From Entomortierella parvispora E1425 (Eukaryota; Fungi; Mortierellomycota): a stretch of DNA of 64,000 nucleotides. Below, in pieces: positions 53,032 through 63,512 of this stretch (positions are counted from its first letter, which is position 1; each line of letters starts with the position of its first letter). Both the position numbers and the translations under genes were made by a program. The stretch covers positions 930,001 to 994,000 of the forward strand of contig BQFW01000001.1 of the NCBI GenBank assembly GCA_020891255.1, read 5' to 3'. The notes below the pieces were generated by a model. That model was not told where the DNA came from and made no database searches. It saw only the letters and a list, made by a program, of their open reading frames with translations.

Positions 53032-54404
53032 TTAAAAAATGATACCGTGCTGCTCTTTGAAGGTTGTGACCAAGTCCATGCAGTTGTCCAAGTTGCTTAC
53101 TGGGAGCCATTCGTCAGCTTCTCTGCCGTAGCCTTTGAATGACACTAGGAACTGGTGTTGTCTGCGGTAGAAGCGGTACTTTAAAATTTCGTCCACTTCA
53201 TACTCCTCTTCGCCGTCAATTACAGTGGGATCCACGGGGGCAGGAGCTCGAATGCCGAGTGACTCCGGGGACGGCAAATAGGGTCGAAAGGTATCAACGT
53301 GGAAGACGTCATGGATTTTGTAGAATGGTGGCAGCTCGACGCGGAAGGTGACAGGTGAGTGTTGCTCCAAAAGTGTGAACGGGCCAAGGAATTGAGGTCG
53401 AAGTTTATCGGCTGGTCTGATACTGTCGGCAGGGATGGTGATATTGGTGGCACGCAGCAGGACCTTATCGCCAACCTTGTACTTGTGATCCCGTCGTCGC
53501 TTGTTTGCCTGTTGCTCCTGATGATCCTGAGCACGCTGCAGAGCATCCTGGGCCAGGGCAAGGGTGGTCGCCTGCTCAGTCAGGAAGGTATCGACAGTGG
53601 GGACTGAGCTGCTGGGTTTACCGAGGAGAGCGGTGGGGAGACGAGGGTGCTGGCCAGAGTTGAGGAAGAACGGCGAGTATCCCGTGGATGCATTGACAGC
53701 GTTGTTATAGGCGAATTCCAGTGACGGAAGGAGCTGGTCCCAGTTAGACTGCTTGTTGTCAATAAACGCTCTCAACATAGTCTTCAGCGTCTTGTTCATA
53801 ACCTCTGTCTGCCCATCCGTCTGTGGGTGGTAGGCGGTTGACAGTGCAAGTTTGACATCCATTAGCCTGTGCAACTCTTGCCAGAATCTACTAGTGAATC
53901 GAGTGTCGCGGTCCGAGATGATGGATGTTGGTGTGCCATGCAGCTTAAAGATGTTGTCAAAAAACTGGTGGGCGACGTCGACGGCTGTGGCAGAGGTAGT
54001 ACTGGGGGCGAAGTGAGCTTGCTTGGTCAGCTTGTCGACAAACACTGTGATGGCGTCAAAATTTCTAGCTGTGGGCGGAAGAGGGCCGATGAAGTCCATG
54101 GTGACTACCTCCCAACGTTGCGAAGGAATGGGTAGCGGTTGCAAGAGTCCAGCTGGTCGATCCTGTGAGTCCTTGTTCCTTTGACACTTCTCGCAGGTTG
54201 CTACATACTGCTGGGTATCCTTGGCGATGTGGGGCCAATATACGAAACGGCGCAGGTTGTCGTAAGTCTTTTGAAAACCAAAGTGTCCAGCAGTGGCAGA
54301 GTCGTGAGCGTCGTGCAAGAGAGTGAGGCGGATCGGGGAGTGCCGAGGGATGGCCAGGGTGGTTGCTCCACGTCGGGTAAAGTAGAGGAGGTTGTTCTGG
54401 AATG
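53032..54404 (-). CDS. Element A pol, 3' part: integrase + chromodomain
   Basis: HDSATAGHFG…CEKCQRNK, VTMDFI, SIISDRDTRFTS, QTDGQTEVMN, GPF (GPY/F) motif and chromodomain EYEVDEILK…VSFKGYG. In frame with the RT part once element B and one TSD are removed. Confidence 0.92.
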
Positions 54405-54616
54405 TGTGATATTCTCGTGGGGTCTTACTTACAAACAATAACCGTCAATAGAAGTCAACGAGAACAAGAGAGGGTTTTATTAAAGACAGGCACCAGCAGG
54501 TCTTTTATAGTCCGGCGGGTGCCAGTCACGGAAGACTCTTAAACATCGGAGAAGTAAAAAAGGACTGCGACTCAGGACTGGCGTCCTGAACCCCATACCT
54601 AGTGCTAAACATCACA
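54405..54616 (-). repeat. 3' LTR of element B
   Basis: 212 bp, TG…CA. TATAAAA at 54509-54503 and AATAAA at 54481-54476 on the minus strand. Confidence 0.97.
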
Positions 54617-55209
54617 GACTCCCCCTCCAGAACTGAACTAGGGAAGTGTTCGTAATGTGTGGCTAGAAGCGGTAGCTAACCGTTCTGAGTAGCCATGATT
54701 AAAGGAAAAAAAACCGTTAGGACGGGCAAAATAAGCCTTTAGTCAATAAGCGAGGGATTGAAACCTCATTGTGAACTAAGCAGATTGTACAAGTCTGTCT
54801 TTGTCACTTGAGAAGTAAACCGTGAAGATCGGGAAAGCTTCTACTCTCAGGCAAAAAATAAAACCTGTGCGAGACAGTGCGTCTGCAGATTGCAACTGTC
54901 TATTACTTAGACTGGCTTGTGCCATGTCATTAGTCAGGGGTGATCTGACTTGTCAAGATGGAAAACGCAAAGCGGACAAAACCATTGACAATGTAGTTGC
55001 ATGAGGAGAGGAATGACAAAAGCAAAAAGCTTGTTTGTCTCACTCACGCACGGGTCAAGGAGTTAGAGCATGCGCGCCCACTCCCCCCGCAAAAAAAAAA
55101 AAAAAATGAAAAAATTTTCTAAGCCACCGCCCATTAGGATGGCCCATCATCTAATTCATTCAACTCAATTCAGCTCCCCATTCCTTTTCACTTTTCTCCC
55201 AGAGGACGA

Positions 55210-58200
55210 CTACAGCTTCGCTCTTTTGTTTCGCTCTGACCTTCGGACAGACTGGACATTGTCAACAGTAAAAGAGACCTTCTTAAGCGCCTTATTCGGG
55301 ACTTTTCGTTGTCTCGTCTCCGTCGCCTGTAGAGCGTGCAGTCTTTTCAACTCTTCCTTCTTGGCCTTCTCCAACTTGCGTTGATGCTTGGCGACCACTC
55401 GCGGATTCTTTTCATTCATGCGTTTCCAGTATTGGTGGACCATCTGGTCTGAGTCAAACCTCTCGTAGGGGATGTAGGAGTCTTCACTATCCTTGTATCC
55501 CTTCCAGTGGACCTTGTAGAGTATTCTGCCGTCTTCAAAAGTATGGCCTTTGATTGATTCTACTTCATAGCTCTCTTCGGAGGGCTTTTCTAGGTCCTGG
55601 GTTACTACGTTGAGCTGCTCAGGTGCATAATGACGAGGAAGAATCTCACCAATTGCGTTTTGTAATTCATAGGCTCCGAAAGCTGTCCTTCTTGTTACTT
55701 TAAAAGGGCCGTCCTTTTTAGGGGTAAGAGCACCTTCGGCAACAGGATCTTCAGCCATGACGAATGCACCAGGTTGTATTTCGCGAATGGTGTGAGATTT
55801 GTTGAACTTATCGATCATTTTCCTTTGGTTACTGGAGCTAAGCTCTGATAACGCAGGAAATACCAGGTGAGTCAAGTATAATAATCTTTTCTCTAATTCT
55901 TCATCATTTAGAAGACGACTCTCGGCCGCTGTGAAGTTTGATATCCCAGGAAATGCTCGACCATAAAATAGTGAGAATGGTGTTGAATTGTGAAGTGACA
56001 CAATTTTGCTGTTCATCTGAAGCTGAACCATGGGTAAGTGCACATCCCAATCAGTAGGGTTTGCTTCAATGTTTTTTCGCAAGATGTCCTTCATTGACTT
56101 GATATGTCTTTCCGCCACTCCGTTACCTCGAGGGTGGTATGGCGTTGAGACTCGGTGGTCAATCTGTAGAGTTTCTGTCAGATTGGTAATAATTTTGTTG
56201 ACAAACTCTAGACCATTGTCGCTTTGGATAATCTTTGGAAATCCAATGTCGCAAAATAGACGAAAGAGACGCTTACTAACTGAAGCAGCATCTTTTGTTT
56301 TCAATTCAAATAGGAAAACAAATCTAGTGCAGACATCGACAACTAGGAGGGCATATTCATTGCCGTCTTTACTTGGTGGAAATTGAGCCAAGTCAATAGC
56401 CAGATGTTCACCAGGGAGTTCTGCGTGAATGGCTTTTTAAAGGGTGGTATCCCTTTCTAGCAATGTTGTACCGCTGACATGATGAACATGATTTAACCCA
56501 GAGGACACAGTCTTCTTTCAATTTGGGCCACGTCATATTGTCTAGCTGGATCATGTTGACCATTGCTGTCGCACCTAGATGACCAAAGGAGTGAGTCCTG
56601 TTCAAGATCTCTCTTCTTTTGGACTTCTCAGGTACTTGTCTATTATCAGGTTCAGGAATTTGATGCATGAAAGGTTTATCAGACAATTGAACGCCTTCTG
56701 CTAGTTTAAGACCTTCTGGACTCATCCGCAGGGCAAAATCTACAGAGTCGATAGTCTCTGCATCTGGAGCTGCCATTGCTGCATTGAATCTCTTACGAGC
56801 CTTAATCTCTGACATCTTGCTTTCCTCCCATAGATCATCAGGAAATGCTCTGGACAATGCATCTGGAATAACATTCAGGATCCCAGGACGATGGATGATC
56901 TTAAAGTCATAGTTGAAGATCGTCTCTTTCCAGTCTGCCATGATGTTGTTCAGATTCTCTTGATCCATCAGGAAGGTCAATGGCTTATGGTCAGTGAACA
57001 GAGTGAAGCGTCTTCCCCACAGGTAATAGTGGAACTTCTTAAGTGTAAAGATAATTGCCAACAATTCTTTCTTGTATGCAGGGTATCGCTTCTCATGATC
57101 ACGCAGTGCCCGAGCCATAAACGAGATGTAATTAATCTTGCTGTCATCTTTTTCTCCCAATGGTAGTTGATACAACATTCCTGCAATACCACGATTGGAC
57201 GCATCGGTTGCAACGTACATCGGAAGTTCCCAAATGACATGGCAAAGGATTGGTGCTTGAGGAATCAATTTCTTAATTCCTTCAAAGCTTCGCATTTGGA
57301 GACTATCCAAAACGAATGGTCCCTTTACGTTTCTCAGGGCATCTAAAGGACTGGCTATGTCACCAAACAGAGGAATATATTCTCTGAAATGGTTGAACAT
57401 TCCCATGTATCTTTGTACCATCTGACCGCTGGTAGGTGGAGCCCATGACTTGATGTTGGCAATCTTTTCAGGATTAATTCTTCTCCCGTACTTGTCAACA
57501 ACAAATCCCAACAGTACAATCTGTGTGCACAGGAAGCGACTCTTCTCTCGATTGATAATGAGTTTTGCTTTTGTTAACCTGTCTATTACAATTTTGACAT
57601 GTTGTAGGTGCTCTTCCTTGGTGTGAGAAAAGATAACTATGTCATCTACATAGATGCAGACAAACGAAAGGTCTCCCAGGAGGTAAGTCATTCCTCTCTG
57701 AAAAATACTTGTCATTGGCTTTAAACCAAAAGGAGCTCTCGCAAACATATATTGCCTCCCCTTGTAGGTGAATGCCGTCAGGGGTTGACTCTCTTTTGAT
57801 AGTGGCAACCGATTGTAAGCTTGAGCAAGATCGAGCGTGGAGTAATAACTGTGACCAGCTGTCTTTTTCAGGATGTCGGCGATCTCAGGTAGCTGAAATG
57901 TATCCGATAACAATAACTGCTTGTTTAACAACCTAGGATCTAAACAGACTCTATATTTTAATATCTTGCCTTCTAGGTCTCTTCTGGCTGATAAGGTCAG
58001 CGAGTTATTGTGTGGATTGCCTTTCGGCGCAGGCACAATCACCCCACTATCCCACCATTTTACGATTTGTTGAGCTACTTCAGCATCTGCTGTCTGCGCA
58101 TGGAATTGTCTTGTCTTGACAAAGACTGTGCAGTTAGGAGGTACTTTGAGTTCAACTCTCATAATCTCCAAGGTACAGTGGCTCTTGGGATCAATCGCGG

Positions 58201-60385
58201 TGTTGAGGTCCAGTAGATTCTGAATCTCTTTCTCAAAAAGGGCTTTGTCTCTGATAAATTCAGCAGTTTTTTCTTCTTCAGGCTTTTCGTCAGGAATGAT
58301 CGGCGGCTTGTCTTCATCATGAATCCAGATGTCAGGTAGAGGAGATGGTTTGGGCATTCGGACACCTCCGATGTAATACCCAAAGCGATGGAATAGGTCT
58401 GCTCCGACATAAAAGTCATAGTAAGGTATGTTCATAACACCCACTTGACAAGAGACCGAACGTCCATTGCAGGCAAGATCTAATTTATCACATGTAAGTA
58501 GGTTCTCTGCCTTAGCTCCTGCTTTCTCCCAGCTCAACTGGATCTGGTAGCTTTGCCACTCGAATTCCCAGCTCTTTAGCAATCGCTGAATCAATGAACG
58601 AATCCGTCGATCCAGTGTCTAGAACTGCTGTAAGTGATTTACCATTGGCAATTAATTCTACCGCAAAACGGTTGTCACCCTCTTGCGCACCTCTGAAAGC
58701 ACAAAGCTTCTTCGTTGGTGGTGTTGGGTCAAACTCATTAAAGTACTTTGAAAATTCAGCAATTTTATTAATACTAACAGTTCCAATTTCTTCTGCTAGA
58801 TTGGCATCCAGACTCGAACTGCGGATCATATCGATTTCTCTAGTGATGGCAGCTAGTCTCTTAGGATTCAATGGAACCAATGGAATTGGGCTACTCTTTT
58901 TCATGGCTGCGACCGCGCGGATAGGACCTTGCTCAGGCCTTGCTTTCTTGAAGGACGGTCGCAACTCAGGGTGCACAAAGTAGCACTTGGAGTGATGATG
59001 CTTCTTGGAGTTGCATCTCTCACTGGTACATGGCTGCTTCTCCTTCTCGCTACGAGGGTGCTTGCCAGTGCTTGCTTGCGGAATCTGCGCCTTCTTCCCA
59101 ATGGTGGTAGAGGAGGAAGCACTCTTTCCTGCAAGTGACTTGAATCTTGACTTGAACCACTTGGCCCAATCAGTCTTGCGACCAGGAAGTGCAGTATTGT
59201 CGGCTCGGAGGCACTCGAGGAACTTCAATACGTTCGGGACATCAGGCAGATTTGGGTAAGTCTTTGTAACTGCTTTCTGGCCCTCATCCGGCAAACCCGC
59301 ATAAAGTGACTGAATGACCAACTTCTCATGCACAGTATCCGTTAGGCCAGACGCTTCTAACAGAAGATCAACCTTGTACGCATAGAGGTGGATATCAGCA
59401 AATGATGCTGAATCCAAAGAGAAAAAGCTTGTTCATCGCCTCAGCTTGCAAGAGCTCGACTCGAAATAACTCCTGGATGCACTTCTCAACTGGAATCCAA
59501 GTGTTGATGGAGCTGTAATCGTAGCACGGAGGAGACTCTGTCTCAATCACATTGTCCATCTGGGTGGCTAGGTCCTTGCCCATTTGCTTGAGCATGTCGT
59601 CTAGCAACTTTACTTCGATACCAGCCTTGCGGAACGCCTTCATCATGTACTGACTCGCCATGATGTCAAACAGACTGCCCAGCTGGATCTTGTAGAACTC
59701 GGAGAACTCACGCATAAACTTGTTGATTGCACGAACGATTTCCATGGCGTCAGTGCTGGCTTGGAAGTTCAGCTTCAGTTCCGGCTCATCGTCGAAGTTT
59801 ATCGGGATCACTCTGGAGAAGTCGATCTTCTCACTGTCCTTAAATACAGGAACGGCCTTTTCTTTCAAGCGCCTGATGTCAATATGATACAGGTTGGAGT
59901 TGTTGAAGGGAATGGCGTAGGCACCGGTGGTTTCGACTGATGGAGTCGTAGTGGTTGGTGTAGGTGTAGACATGGGCGTCTCGCTTCGACCTCTCCAACT
60001 CATGTCCACTGGCTCTCGAGGACAAAACTCCTTCCAGTGATGGTATGCCAGGTCCATGTCTCGGGTCACCGTTTTAATCTTGCTGAATGTGGCATCGATC
60101 TGAGCGCTGTGGTTGCTGAGGATCTTGTCTCTTTCCTCAGGGCCCATGTTCGCATCCTGGTCGAGCTCTTTGGTCGCCTTTCGAAGGGCGTCCTTTTGCT
60201 GCACGAACTTCAGCAGTAATTCGGTCCGCTCAATTGTGACTTTGTCCAGTTCTTTTCTTCATCACATCAGCCATAGAAATAGCTTCTGTCGGAATAGGAA
60301 CGGCGTCGTCATACTCTTGCATTGGGACATCTTCGGACAGAGGCGCTGGAGGGCGCTCTGGACTTGCATCGACCTCGGCACTCAT
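55210..60385 (-). CDS. Element B gag-pol polyprotein, broken into 5 frames by four +1 homopolymer indels; ~1,723 aa if corrected
   Basis: ATG at 60385 (MSAEVDASP…), protease VLDTGSTDSFI, RT CIYVDDIVIF, RNase H VATDASNRG, integrase HSFGHLG…CSSC/AIDL/SDNG/ER, chromodomain YEVESIKGH…VHWKGY. 5176 nt minus 4 = 1724 codons. Confidence 0.9.
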
Positions 60386-60838
60386 AAGGTAACGCTATTG
60401 ATGCGAATGAATACAAAAGAAGCGTTACGCTATGTCTCTTGAATACAGATAGTGAACGCTAACCAGTCAATCGAGTTGGTGGTTTAGACGTAAACAATAA
60501 TATTTTGTTTTGGGACTCAGCCAACAAAAACAAAATCAGTGATATGGACGACAACAGTTGCTGGACTCACTGCAGTGGATCAACCTCTGAACAATGGATC
60601 TACAGTAACAATGTTGTTCGAACAATGTGTGGAGCACAAAGGAGTGATCAAAGAAAAGGGGCACAAAGGACAAGCCGTTGTGTTCTTTCCGATCAACCTG
60701 CACGGGTGGATACGACTGAGAGGAGATCCCAATTACTGTACACTACACAACAGAGAGGATGATCGATTCTCAAAGGATGGATGATCAACCGGACTGATAG
60801 ATGTATAATGGTAATGGATGGATGCCCACTCTTAAGTA

Positions 60839-60850
60839 CGTTGAAAAAAA
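60839..60850 (-). promoter_or_regulatory. Non-canonical primer-binding site of element B (TTTTTTTCAACG)
   Basis: Lies directly 3' of the 5' LTR, lacks the TGG needed for tRNA-CCA priming, and is complementary to CGTTGA+poly(A) of the LTR. Confidence 0.65.
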
Positions 60851-61062
60851 TGTGATATTCTCGTGGGGTCTTACTTACAAACAATAACCGTCAATAGAAG
60901 TCAACGAGAACAAGAGAGGGTTTTATTAAAGACAGGCACCAGCAGGTCTTTTATAGTCCGGCGGGTGCCAGTCACGGAAGACTCTTAAACATCGGAGAAG
61001 TAAAAAAGGACTGCGACTCAGGACTGGCGTCCTGAACCCCATACCTAGTGCTAAACATCACA
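60851..61062 (-). repeat. 5' LTR of element B
   Basis: Matches 54405-54616 base for base by eye. Confidence 0.97.
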
Positions 61063-63512
61063 GAATGAATATCCATTGGCAACCTTCCCATCCAGGCAAT
61101 CCTTGTAGATGGGTCCAAGTCGAGGATCGTCGTTGTAGTCCTGGACAAGCTGGTCACGGACGTCCGGGGACAGGGAGACGCTGAGGTTGTATAGCTCAAC
61201 AGGGTCAGGCTCGCGGTAGTCCGGTCGTCGGGAGAGAGCGTCTGGGACGATGTTGTCAACTCCTCGCTTGTACTTGAAGTCAAAGTCGTATTCCTGAAGC
61301 AACTCCATCCAGCGAGCCTGTCGACGAGTGAGTTTGGGCTGTGTGGGGAAGTGGCGGAGGGTGGCGTGGTCGGTGTGGACGCTGAACTTGGTTCCATCGA
61401 GGTAGTAGCGCCAAGTGCGGAGCGCATGGATGACAGCCAACAGTTCCTGCTCATGGACAGGGTAGTTCCGCTCAGCTGACTGCATTTTCCTGGAAGTGAA
61501 TGCGATGGGATGGGTATTCCCTTCCCGGTCAGTCTGCAGCAGCACTGCACCGATGGCGAAACCGGATGCATCTGTTTCGACAAAGGTGAGGAGATCAGGG
61601 TCGAAGATGCGGAGGACGGGGGCGGAGCAGATGGCGCGTTTGAGCTGAAGGAATGCAGATTGTTGTTCGTCGGTCCATTTGAAGGGAGTGTTGTTGGCGA
61701 GGAGGGAAGAGAGAGGGAGGGCAATCCCTGCAAAGCCCGATACGTACTGTTGATAAAATTGCGCAAGCCCCAAAAATTGCTGGACGTCCTTTGTGCTCTT
61801 GGGGGTGGGCCAGTCACTGATGGCTTTGCTGAGCCCGGCCGATGTTTTGATCCCGTCCTTCGTGATGGTGTGGCCCAAAAATTCAGTTTCGTCTTGCATG
61901 AAGGAGCACTTGCTCAATTTCGCGTACAGACCATTCTTGCGGAGGAGAGCCAGGACGCTTCGGAGATGCTGCAGGTGTTCTTTCTTTGTCTTGGAGTAGA
62001 TCAACAGATCGTCGAGATACACGACAACCCATTTGTCCAAGACTGGATCGAGCACTCGCAACATCATATTGGAGAACGAAGCAGGAGCGTTAGTAAGGCC
62101 AAAGGGAACAACATTGAACTCAAAGTGACCATAGCGACAACGGAAGGCAGTCTTGTGTGTGTGTGGTTCAAAGATACGCTGCTGATGATAACCGGATAAC
62201 AAGTCCAACTTGGAGTAATAGCGTGCTCCACGGAAGCGGTCAAGAAGCTCGTCGATACGGGGCAGCGGGTGTCTGTTCTTCCTGGTGATCTTGTTGAGGC
62301 CACGGTAGTCGACGCACATTCGGAGTGTGCCGTCCTTCTTCCGCACAAAGAGCACGGGGGCGCCATAGGGAGAGGTATTGGGTTTGATAAAACCTGCTGC
62401 TAGCAATTGGTCCAGTTGTTTGCGAAGTTCGTCAAGCTCGGCGATTGAAAGTCTAATGACAGGGCGGAAGGGTGGGTCGGCTGTCGGGTCGGTCTCGATC
62501 TTCATAGCATCACCACGGTCTGGGGGCAGGCCGTCCGGGAGTTTCTCCGGAAAGACATCAGCGAACTCTTCCATGACAATGGACCGCACCTCTGGGGGTC
62601 ATATCGGGAATTGTACGCGGTTGGTCAGTTTCTTCAGAGGGCTCTGGGGTGTTGCGAATAAGGGCCAGGAACACCTCCGAGCCGGGCAGGGTTGCCATGG
62701 AATGAAAGTGCATGTGTGTGAGGAGGAGTCCTTTGGTGCGGCTTTTGGATGTGATCGGCCTTGAAGCCGCGGCAGCTCCATTTGACATCGATTCCATTGT
62801 GAGTGAAATGAAGATCGTTGGTGCGCCAATTGATGCAAGGGTTAACTTTGGTGAGCCAGGGTTTGCCAAGGATGAGGTCGTATTTGTTGAGAGGATAGAG
62901 AATAGGGTTGAGCGAATCGGAGTAGTCGCTGCGGTTGAGGGTGATGGGGACGGTGTGTGATGTGAGGGAGGAAGAGCCATTGGGGAGGAGGATGGGGATG
63001 GGCAAGCATTCAGTGCCGAGGAGCTGGTGTCGCTTTTGAAAAGACGAACTGATAATATTACCTTCTGCACCACCATCAATCAGGATTCTGGCAGCGTGGC
63101 CATTGACAGAACCGATGAAAGTGAGCAGTTGGCTCTCTGCCTTTTGGACAGTGAATTCGTGTAGGCGAATCGCACGACGCTTCAACTTCTTCAACTGACT
63201 TTTGGACAGAGGTACACTAGGTGCCGGCGGTACAGCGAGAGGGTCCGGTTCATCTGTATCGGAGGATCTAGGTAGAGGAGCGGACAGGGCAACTGGAGCG
63301 GGCGAGGCAACAGGTTTTTTGGTTTGGTTTTGGTTTCGGTCCGATAGAACAACCAGAGCATCGTGGATGTGAGTTCGCTTGTCATGATTGGAGTCATGTT
63401 TCTGAGGTGTAGAATCAAGTGAAGTTTTATTTGAGGTACTTAGCTCAGGGTTGTTGGCTACAGTTTCGACAACTGGGGTCCGGACCGACCCTAGTTGCCG
63501 GAGGCTTTTCCC
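61063..63512 (-). CDS. Element A pol, 5' part: protease, RT, RNase H (two +1 indels near 62765 and 62595)
   Basis: ORFs 62634-63194 (protease) and 61051-62589 (RT/RH), bridged by a third frame SKSRTKGLLL…PDMT. Opens in the -1 frame from the slippery site at 63512. Confidence 0.9.
63468..63512 (-). promoter_or_regulatory. -1 programmed ribosomal frameshift signal (gag to pol) of element A
   Basis: Slippery heptamer G GGA AAA (63512-63506), 6-nt spacer, then hairpin GGCAACT-A-GGGTC/GGTCCG/GACCC-C-AGTTGTC. The -1 frame has no stop through to the protease. Confidence 0.8.

Follow-up and report, generated by a model that had tools for sequence, protein, structure and literature searches.

How does an LTR retrotransposon begin synthesis of its minus strand when no tRNA-type site adjoins its 5' LTR? 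The question is raised by an element of the fungus Entomortierella parvispora located within the window analysed here (a stretch of 64,000 nucleotides, to whose numbering all plain coordinates refer), in which the 5' LTR is followed directly by a run of T's. To our knowledge, only three kinds of primers are established for LTR retroelements: the 3' end of a tRNA, internal tRNA fragments or halves, and the 5' self-primer of Tf1-type elements. A comparison with related elements points to a further answer, namely that this element is probably a member of a clade in which the primer-binding site is complementary to the polyadenylated 3' end of the element itself. On balance, we also lean towards the broader proposal that chromoviruses of early-diverging fungi (Mortierellomycota and Mucorales, possibly together with Skipper and Tcn1-like elements) prime from this end, i.e., from R plus 6–8 A's.

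The element occupies positions 61062-54405 on the minus strand (6,658 bp) and has the full anatomy of an LTR retrotransposon. Its two 212-bp TG...CA LTRs (5' LTR, 60851..61062, with edges set by the flanking duplication; 3' LTR, 54405..54616) are 100% identical direct repeats; they are bounded by the 5-bp target-site duplication CATTC (61063..61067 and 54400..54404), and a polypurine tract, GGAGGGGGAG (54619..54628, minus strand), ends 2 nt before the 3' LTR. Gag-pol (55210..60204, minus strand) encodes protease, RT, RNase H, integrase and a chromodomain (Pfam matches: Asp_protease_2, RVT_1, RT_RNaseH, Integrase_H2C2, rve and Chromo), and both the domain order PR-RT-RNase H-IN and the position of the chromodomain at the integrase C-terminus are those of chromoviruses. 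Thus, the element is a young chromovirus (Ty3/Gypsy with chromodomain). Its family is represented in the genome by five copies with a 5' LTR and leader, plus about a dozen more LTRs. The copy on contig 11 (L042), 99.85% identical to that of the window, contains a single 1723-aa gag-pol ORF, and the differences between them are almost all single-base indels in A/T homopolymers (at 60256, 59426, 58525, 56438 and 55104-55106, as well as at 61008 and 54562) that split gag-pol of the window copy into four frames, reflecting genuine decay of a copy that is very young or else homopolymer errors of long-read sequencing. A second Ty3/Gypsy element (61068-62589 and 53032-54404, minus strand) hosts this insertion; its RNase H/integrase frame is broken exactly at the CATTC duplication, and its RT is ~34% identical to that of the inserted element.

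The primer-binding region (60829..60850, minus strand) consists of a T7 run that begins at the first base past the 5' LTR (60844..60850), CAACG (60839..60843, hereafter helix 1'), a TACTT loop and AAGAG (60829..60833, helix 2'). The T-run is absent after the 3' LTR, where CATTC follows, and thus lies outside the LTR. Within the LTR, a TATA-like box, TATAAAAG (60948..60955 in the 5' LTR), starts 28 nt upstream of AATAAA (54476..54481 in the 3' LTR, 60922..60927 in the 5' LTR), which is followed by ACC and then by CTCTT-GTTCT-CGTTGA (54470-54455 and 60916-60901, respectively; all on the minus strand). The last A of CGTTGA is located 21 nt past AATAAA and, in the 3' LTR (A54455), marks the predicted cleavage and poly(A) site; it ends the predicted R, ACCCTCTCTTGTTCTCGTTGA (54455..54474, minus strand), which is complementary to the primer site. 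The corresponding R block of the 5' LTR (60901..60920, minus strand) can pair with the primer site in cis, leaving the T-run unpaired.

A preliminary description of this locus had drawn attention to the match between the site and the element's own poly(A) junction, and its layout and positions were all confirmed upon re-reading of the window sequence. No TGG is found within 0–5 nt of the 5' LTR, as would be expected of a tRNA-primed element; CGTTGA followed by six A's can pair without mismatch with the 12 nt immediately past the 5' LTR; and the second block, CTCTT, is matched by AAGAG beyond a 5x5 internal loop. RNAduplex extends this pairing by CCC/GGG. Without the added A's, complementarity begins 6 nt from the LTR and is just 6 nt long. 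The folding energy of the whole leader is unremarkable (z = -0.9). As a separate observation, an 80%-identical LTR variant elsewhere in the genome (L014, G000:C13:1965952-1966144) lacks exactly the block from AATAAA to CGTTG (~26 nt), i.e., the predicted poly(A) signal and R, while its U3 and U5 flanks are kept and no T-run follows it.

The primer site is identical in all five full copies of the window family, which makes covariation within the family impossible. The preliminary description had named a better-matching cellular RNA as a finding that would speak against its proposal, and the search for it came back empty: the 17-nt site and its complement occur exactly in the genome only at the five element copies, near matches of the site are fewer than for the control, no tRNA gene lies within the window, and Rfam returned nothing relevant. 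Searches for RNA-like ends and for junction copies were likewise negative, as not one of the ~100 related contigs has a terminal poly(A) or an initial poly(T), and genomic DNA copies of the R-poly(A) junction (TTCTCGTTGAAAAAA, up to one mismatch) amount to 14 matches vs. 23 for the reversed control. The sole exact junction match (L057, 1488-1518; G000:C13:1147290), which reads ...CTCTTCCCTGTTCTCGTTGA followed by A9, has no U3 upstream and is probably due to chance.

Relatives were collected from three sources: other Gypsy families of the same genome (by an RT search, with loci excised), contigs with Pol homologues (from 85% down to 37% identity) and 80 metagenome loci. The same layout is shared by 21 related families, comprising four in this genome, 16 on contigs from soil metagenomes or sequencing runs, and one in Absidia glauca (37% Pol identity), with exact LTR ends established by target duplications in families A–D and inferred from CA and its context in the metagenome families. 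It opens with a TATA-like box, which in 15 families is followed after ~22–28 nt by AATAAA or ATTAAA; a CT-rich helix 2 comes next, then a loop and helix 1 ending in YA or GA, and the layout continues with 23–59 nt of U5, the LTR end CA, T6–8, helix 1', a loop and helix 2'. The TATA-to-AATAAA spacing of the window LTR recurs in relatives. Loci with no recognisable 5' LTR were left out (L044, L045/L046/L070, L047, L072, L079, L081, L107 and L108).

The T6–8 run is present in 21/21 families, either directly at the LTR end or preceded by a single C (D_L034, L053 and L076) or G (L052 and L083), which is compatible with 1-nt end processing. It is followed by a 4–7 nt motif (helix 1') complementary to the LTR motif (helix 1). 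The latter ends 20–28 nt past AATAAA/ATTAAA in 15/21 families, two further families show the poly(A)-signal variants AATACA and AATAAG, and in the other four (C_L041, L055, L083 and L085) neither the canonical signal nor a variant is found near the site. The LTR bases past helix 1 are C/T/G-rich (e.g., CTTC, CTCC, CTCA, GTTC, TTAC or TTTT) and never A-rich in any of the 21, and sequence conservation in the A-type trio drops right past CGTTGA.

The partners themselves differ widely. The LTR motif CGTTGA faces T7 CAACG in the window family, L048 and L043; TCACTGA faces T7-8 CAGTGA in family B; CAATTA faces T6-7 AATTG in family C and L055; and CGTCA faces C-T7 GACG in family D, L053 and L076. CGTTA is matched by T7 AACG in L052 and L054, and further pairs are CCTTGA with T6 CAAGG (L050), CCTTA with T7 AAGG (L051), TCATCA with T7 GATGA (L083), CAATCTA with T6 AGATTG (L085), CAACA with T8 GTTG (L086), TCATCGA with T7 CGATGA (L102) and TCCTGA with T6 CAGGA (L116). 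In the Absidia glauca family, at 37% Pol identity, TCATCATA corresponds to T6 ATGATG.

Some variation around the T-run was also observed. Its length differs within family B (T8 vs. T7 in L024 vs. L025/L030/L031) and within family C (T6 vs. T7 in L032 vs. L026/L041), consistent with slippage in homopolymers or with the run being rebuilt in every cycle. At the expected position of the run, a (CA)n tract is found in L071 (at about 95-120) and in L045/L070 (upstream of the ORF); in L071 it directly follows the LTR end that in L068 precedes T6-CAAGGA. These relatives may be dead or rearranged copies, or possible exceptions.

Covariation between the primer site and the LTR sequence ~20 nt past AATAAA, on which the preliminary description had made its reading depend, proved to be strong, with ~15 helix-1 sequences, all of them compensated. 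In 21/21 families the T-run plus motif is complementary to the LTR motif plus A(n) and covaries with it, helix 1 and the A-run together providing 11–13 perfect base pairs from nt 1 of the site, while the lengths of the T-run and of helix 1 trade off against each other (T8 with 5, T6 with 8). Positions 1–4 of helix 1 in the first 13 families show 52/52 Watson-Crick pairs with 2–4 pair types per column; permutation of the sites among these families gave 24 pairs on average and 44 at most, with 0/20,000 permutations reaching 52, and sliding the register along helix 1 gave 1–13 pairs vs. 52 in the true register. As a background set, we have used 607 other T6–8 runs in all fetched loci, seeking an anchored complement in the preceding 130 nt; such a complement of at least 5 nt was found for 17% of them and of at least 6 nt for 7%, vs. 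21/21 (range 5–8 nt) and 14/21, respectively, for the post-LTR runs (Mann-Whitney p = 5e-13), where the support rests on this background control, the permutation and the constant structural position, since the LTR anchor was found by matching, and where the diversity of compensated states is what counts, since the families are related and the trials are not independent. A chance match is effectively excluded by the background test.

Helix 2 covaries too (CTCTT/AAGAG, ATCTT/AAGAT, GCTTT/AAAGC, TCTTT/AAAGA and TCTTC/GAAGA), while the loops between the helices are non-complementary in every family. According to RNAduplex, the duplex starts from nt 1 of the site and comprises two or three helices in every family, with a mean energy of -18 kcal/mol for cognate vs. 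-9.6 for non-cognate partners.

The same genome provides controls of other types. Two unrelated Gypsy families (L036/L037 and L038) have a tRNA-type site, TGGTAGCAAAGG, adjoining the LTR. A further element, L039 (G000:C14:2036700-2046690), carries TTGCAGACT flush with its LTR, the complement of AGTCTGCAA, which is located ~35 nt past the TATA sequence TATAAAAA and before AATAAA, as in the classical Tf1-type arrangement. Thus, three types of primer sites (T-run, Tf1 and tRNA) coexist in one genome. In a quick maximum-likelihood tree covering 13 of the T-run families and the same-genome controls (midpoint root, long branches), these 13 families form one clade (SH-aLRT 100) apart from the three controls, the true Tf1-type L039 included, and the helix-1 types map onto its subclades.

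How could a T-run at the LTR edge serve as a primer site? The position of the outer U5 edge in LTR retroelements is determined by where the minus-strand primer has its 3' end. Since the T-run stands at this edge, the primer would have to end in helix 1 plus oligo(A), and since the LTR encodes no A's past helix 1, the obvious source of such an end would be the element's own transcript, cleaved after helix 1 and polyadenylated. The poly(A) tail appears to be the sole constant partner of the invariant T-run. Most LTRs also hold an A-rich heptamer (5–6 A of 7, e.g., AATAAAA), which might conceivably contact the T-run by way of a pseudoknot. The 20–28 nt spacing from AATAAA, the terminal YA or GA and the U/C-rich sequence that follows would all fit a cleavage site. 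The position of the TATA-like box ~28 nt before AATAAA leads to a predicted transcription start at or after AATAAA and to a predicted R of ~20–25 nt, and the location of the motif at the predicted 3' end of this R fits a 3' poly(A) junction and does not fit a 5' end. A comparable arrangement is familiar from RSV and MMTV, which have a very short R (~15–25 nt), AAUAAA in U3 and TATA ~25–30 nt before AATAAA, so that the poly(A) signal is present only at the RNA 3' end; these viruses are primed by tRNAs, and no complementarity exists between their R and the primer site. The likeness to the present clade would thus extend to the TATA spacing, the signal at the RNA 3' end only and the short R.

The proposed cycle may be outlined as follows. 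Transcription would start ~30 nt past TATA, at or just after AATAAA, yielding an RNA whose 5' end lacks a working poly(A) signal and whose R would comprise only helix 2, the loop and helix 1 (~20–25 nt). The AATAAA of the 3' LTR would direct cleavage after the final A of helix 1, so that in the window family the RNA would end in ...CUCUU-GUUCU-CGUUGA-A(n). The 3' end of the same RNA, or of a co-packaged sister, would anneal just past U5, helix 1 and 6–7 A's of the tail forming a perfect 11–13 bp duplex on H1'-U(6–8), with helix 2 adding family-specific stability. A 3'-OH would arise at the A paired with the first U, through RNase H cleavage where the duplex ends (as performed by Tf1 RNase H), through deadenylation or with the excess tail bulged out. 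RT may then extend this end through U5 and R to minus-strand strong-stop DNA, which would be transferred to the 3' R on another RNA or by fold-back, and plus-strand strong-stop DNA would copy the short primer back, regenerating T(n)-H1'. The persistence of the non-complementary loops suggests that only a short primer of 11–13 nt is copied back.

Two steps of this scheme are demanding. Fungal poly(A) tails are far longer than 7 nt and are bound by protein, so that an extra step of cleavage, trimming or bulging must be assumed; likewise, as the ~20-nt R would act as both primer and transfer acceptor, the first strand transfer would need a second RNA or fold-back. The preliminary description had suggested that the oligoadenylated 3' end of the element's own RNA, or that of a sister copy, primes minus-strand synthesis after tail trimming. 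Its core is the best-supported reading of the present data, by virtue of the covariation and of the lack of a cellular match, as a comparative inference and not a demonstration of priming; trimming is retained as just one of several routes to the 3'-OH.

The most obvious competitor is a Tf1-type mechanism, whereby the capped 5' R would fold onto the site, RNase H would cut after helix 1, and the T-run would be a spacer trimmed by integrase. Tf1 primes with the leading 11 nt of its mRNA, which anneal to a site directly adjoining the LTR, and its RNase H cuts at the end of the duplex. The Tf1/sushi group (Tf1, Tf2, Tj1 and Tosmo) and the present clade are both composed of chromoviruses that lack a tRNA site and draw, or would draw, their primer from their own LTR-derived RNA; self-priming is typical of Tf1/sushi chromoviruses, both groups share a short perfect duplex flanked by extra helices (11 bp in Tf1, 11–13 bp in this clade), and cleavage where an RNA duplex ends is probably needed in both. 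Moreover, the 5' R pairs with the site in the predicted cis fold, and helices 1 and 2 would be expected to covary under this alternative too. Indeed, as the 5' copy of R forms both helices in cis, covariation alone cannot separate a 5' from a 3' primer, the two being distinguished only by the T-run, by its position flush with the LTR and by the spacing from AATAAA. Several points weigh against a 5' primer. The T-run, the sole invariant feature across 21 families, would be left without a partner; complementarity would begin 6–8 nt from the LTR, whereas it is flush in Tf1-type elements including L039; integrase would have to remove 7–8 nt; and the complementary block is located past AATAAA and ends at the expected cleavage point. 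The clade thus differs from Tf1 both in the need for 6–8 A's that are not encoded past the motif and in the placement of the motif past AATAAA, at the predicted 3' end of R, and a flush site complementary to the first ~11 nt of the predicted mRNA is not found. In addition, if cleavage occurs where predicted, no R would be left for the first strand transfer after the cut, and copying back of the whole 5' primer would erase the loops, which persist in all families. R and the site are joined by two or three coaxial helices in the form of a simple interrupted stem, which appears to differ from the three-duplex Tf1 'pretzel' of the 5' UTR as described (PMC10085805). The objection of the preliminary description to a plain Tf1 model, that the LTR bases past the motif cannot pair with the T-run, has been borne out, as these bases are not A-rich in 21/21 families and L039 differs. 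Altogether, we regard a 5' primer as unlikely, if still a serious contender.

Covariation is evidence of pairing and not of priming, and the contact between R-oligo(A) and the site might instead serve circularisation, dimerisation, packaging or strand transfer, with another A-ended RNA as the primer (e.g., short, prematurely polyadenylated LTR transcripts or other oligoadenylated RNA). A precedent exists in Ty3, where the 5' and 3' ends of the genome are bridged during initiation via a bipartite tRNA site (PMC4974528). In Ty3 as in the model for this clade, the 3' end of the genomic RNA contributes to the initiation complex formed at the 5' site, cyclising the genome, the difference being that tRNA(iMet) primes in Ty3 and bridges both ends, whereas here the 3' end itself would prime (PMC4974528). 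A purely structural role is nevertheless quite improbable in our estimate: the duplex starts exactly at the U5 edge, the place required of a primer 3' end, no alternative candidate site adjoins the LTR, and the version invoking short R-poly(A) transcripts would be a mere variant of the poly(A)-junction model. Least probable by far is that a tRNA, a tRNA fragment or another cellular RNA primes, or that the match arose by chance in a dead element. While tRNA priming is the default in Ty3/Gypsy elements and a TGG does occur 22 nt past the 5' LTR of the window copy, conservation of this TGG does not extend to the 85% and 70% relatives, and no TGG adjoins the LTR; the site tracks each family's own LTR, which a cellular primer would be unable to do; and the confinement of the 17-nt site to five element copies, the identical LTRs, the intact 1723-aa ORF of the sister copy and the background test all speak against this possibility.

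The poly(A)-junction model may also bear on chromoviruses described without a recognisable primer site. In Skipper elements, a polypyrimidine tract replaces the primer site, and the mechanism was called novel and unknown (Spaller et al., PMC5006619). Both Skipper (dictyostelids and Protostelium) and the present clade are chromoviruses with a T/C-rich stretch directly past the left LTR and no TGG. By published description, the authors report no complementary LTR region for Skipper, whereas this clade has one (PMC5006619). Spaller et al. doubted a simple poly(A) primer on the grounds that a C faces the LTR (PMC5006619); a single C in this position is also present in D_L034, L053 and L076, and a G in L052 and L083. 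Likewise, SM-Tcn1 of Selaginella has no primer site but a conserved thymine-rich leader, and its mechanism was called unclear (Novikova et al., PMC2864245), while the Tcn1 clade is otherwise predicted to self-prime (Neumann et al., PMC6317226). A T-rich leader and the lack of a tRNA site are thus common to SM-Tcn1 and this clade, although, judged by its description, a link to the poly(A) junction was not proposed for SM-Tcn1. The T-rich sites of Skipper and SM-Tcn1 are the nearest known counterparts of the present one, and the model would offer an explanation for both, i.e., for the polypyrimidine tract ('non-PBS') of the former and the thymine-rich leader of the latter.

If true, the use of an element's own poly(A) junction as primer would represent a fourth way of priming LTR retroelements and a new variant of self-primed retrotransposition; in the literature searched, we found no description of an LTR element primed by a poly(A) tail or by its own poly(A) junction, which is not proof of absence. 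It would tie 3'-end processing directly to replication, as only correctly cleaved and adenylated transcripts would prime, and priming would at the same time cyclise or pair genomes. Annotation tools that seek tRNA or 5' self-primer sites would call such elements 'PBS-less'. They could be recognised by a simple rule: T6–8 at the LTR edge, followed by a 4–7 nt complement of the sequence 20–28 nt past AATAAA.

Two additional features of the 3' part of these elements are worth recording. Just past the pol stop of the window copy (55081-55100, minus strand), a run of T10-15 is followed by GCGGGGGGAG. This arrangement, kept in the 85% relative L048, is reminiscent of a further polypurine tract preceded by a U-box. 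Closer to the 3' LTR, the 3' UTR (~54640-54810) contains tandem small hairpin-like units of the form GAGGTTT...TTTCCCTC, with a GAGG/CCTC stem and a U-rich loop. Such units, 3–6 per 3' UTR in the clade, are also found upstream of the polypurine tract in L044, L045, L050, L053 and L054, and across the 3' UTRs of the clade their pattern, and not their sequence, is conserved.
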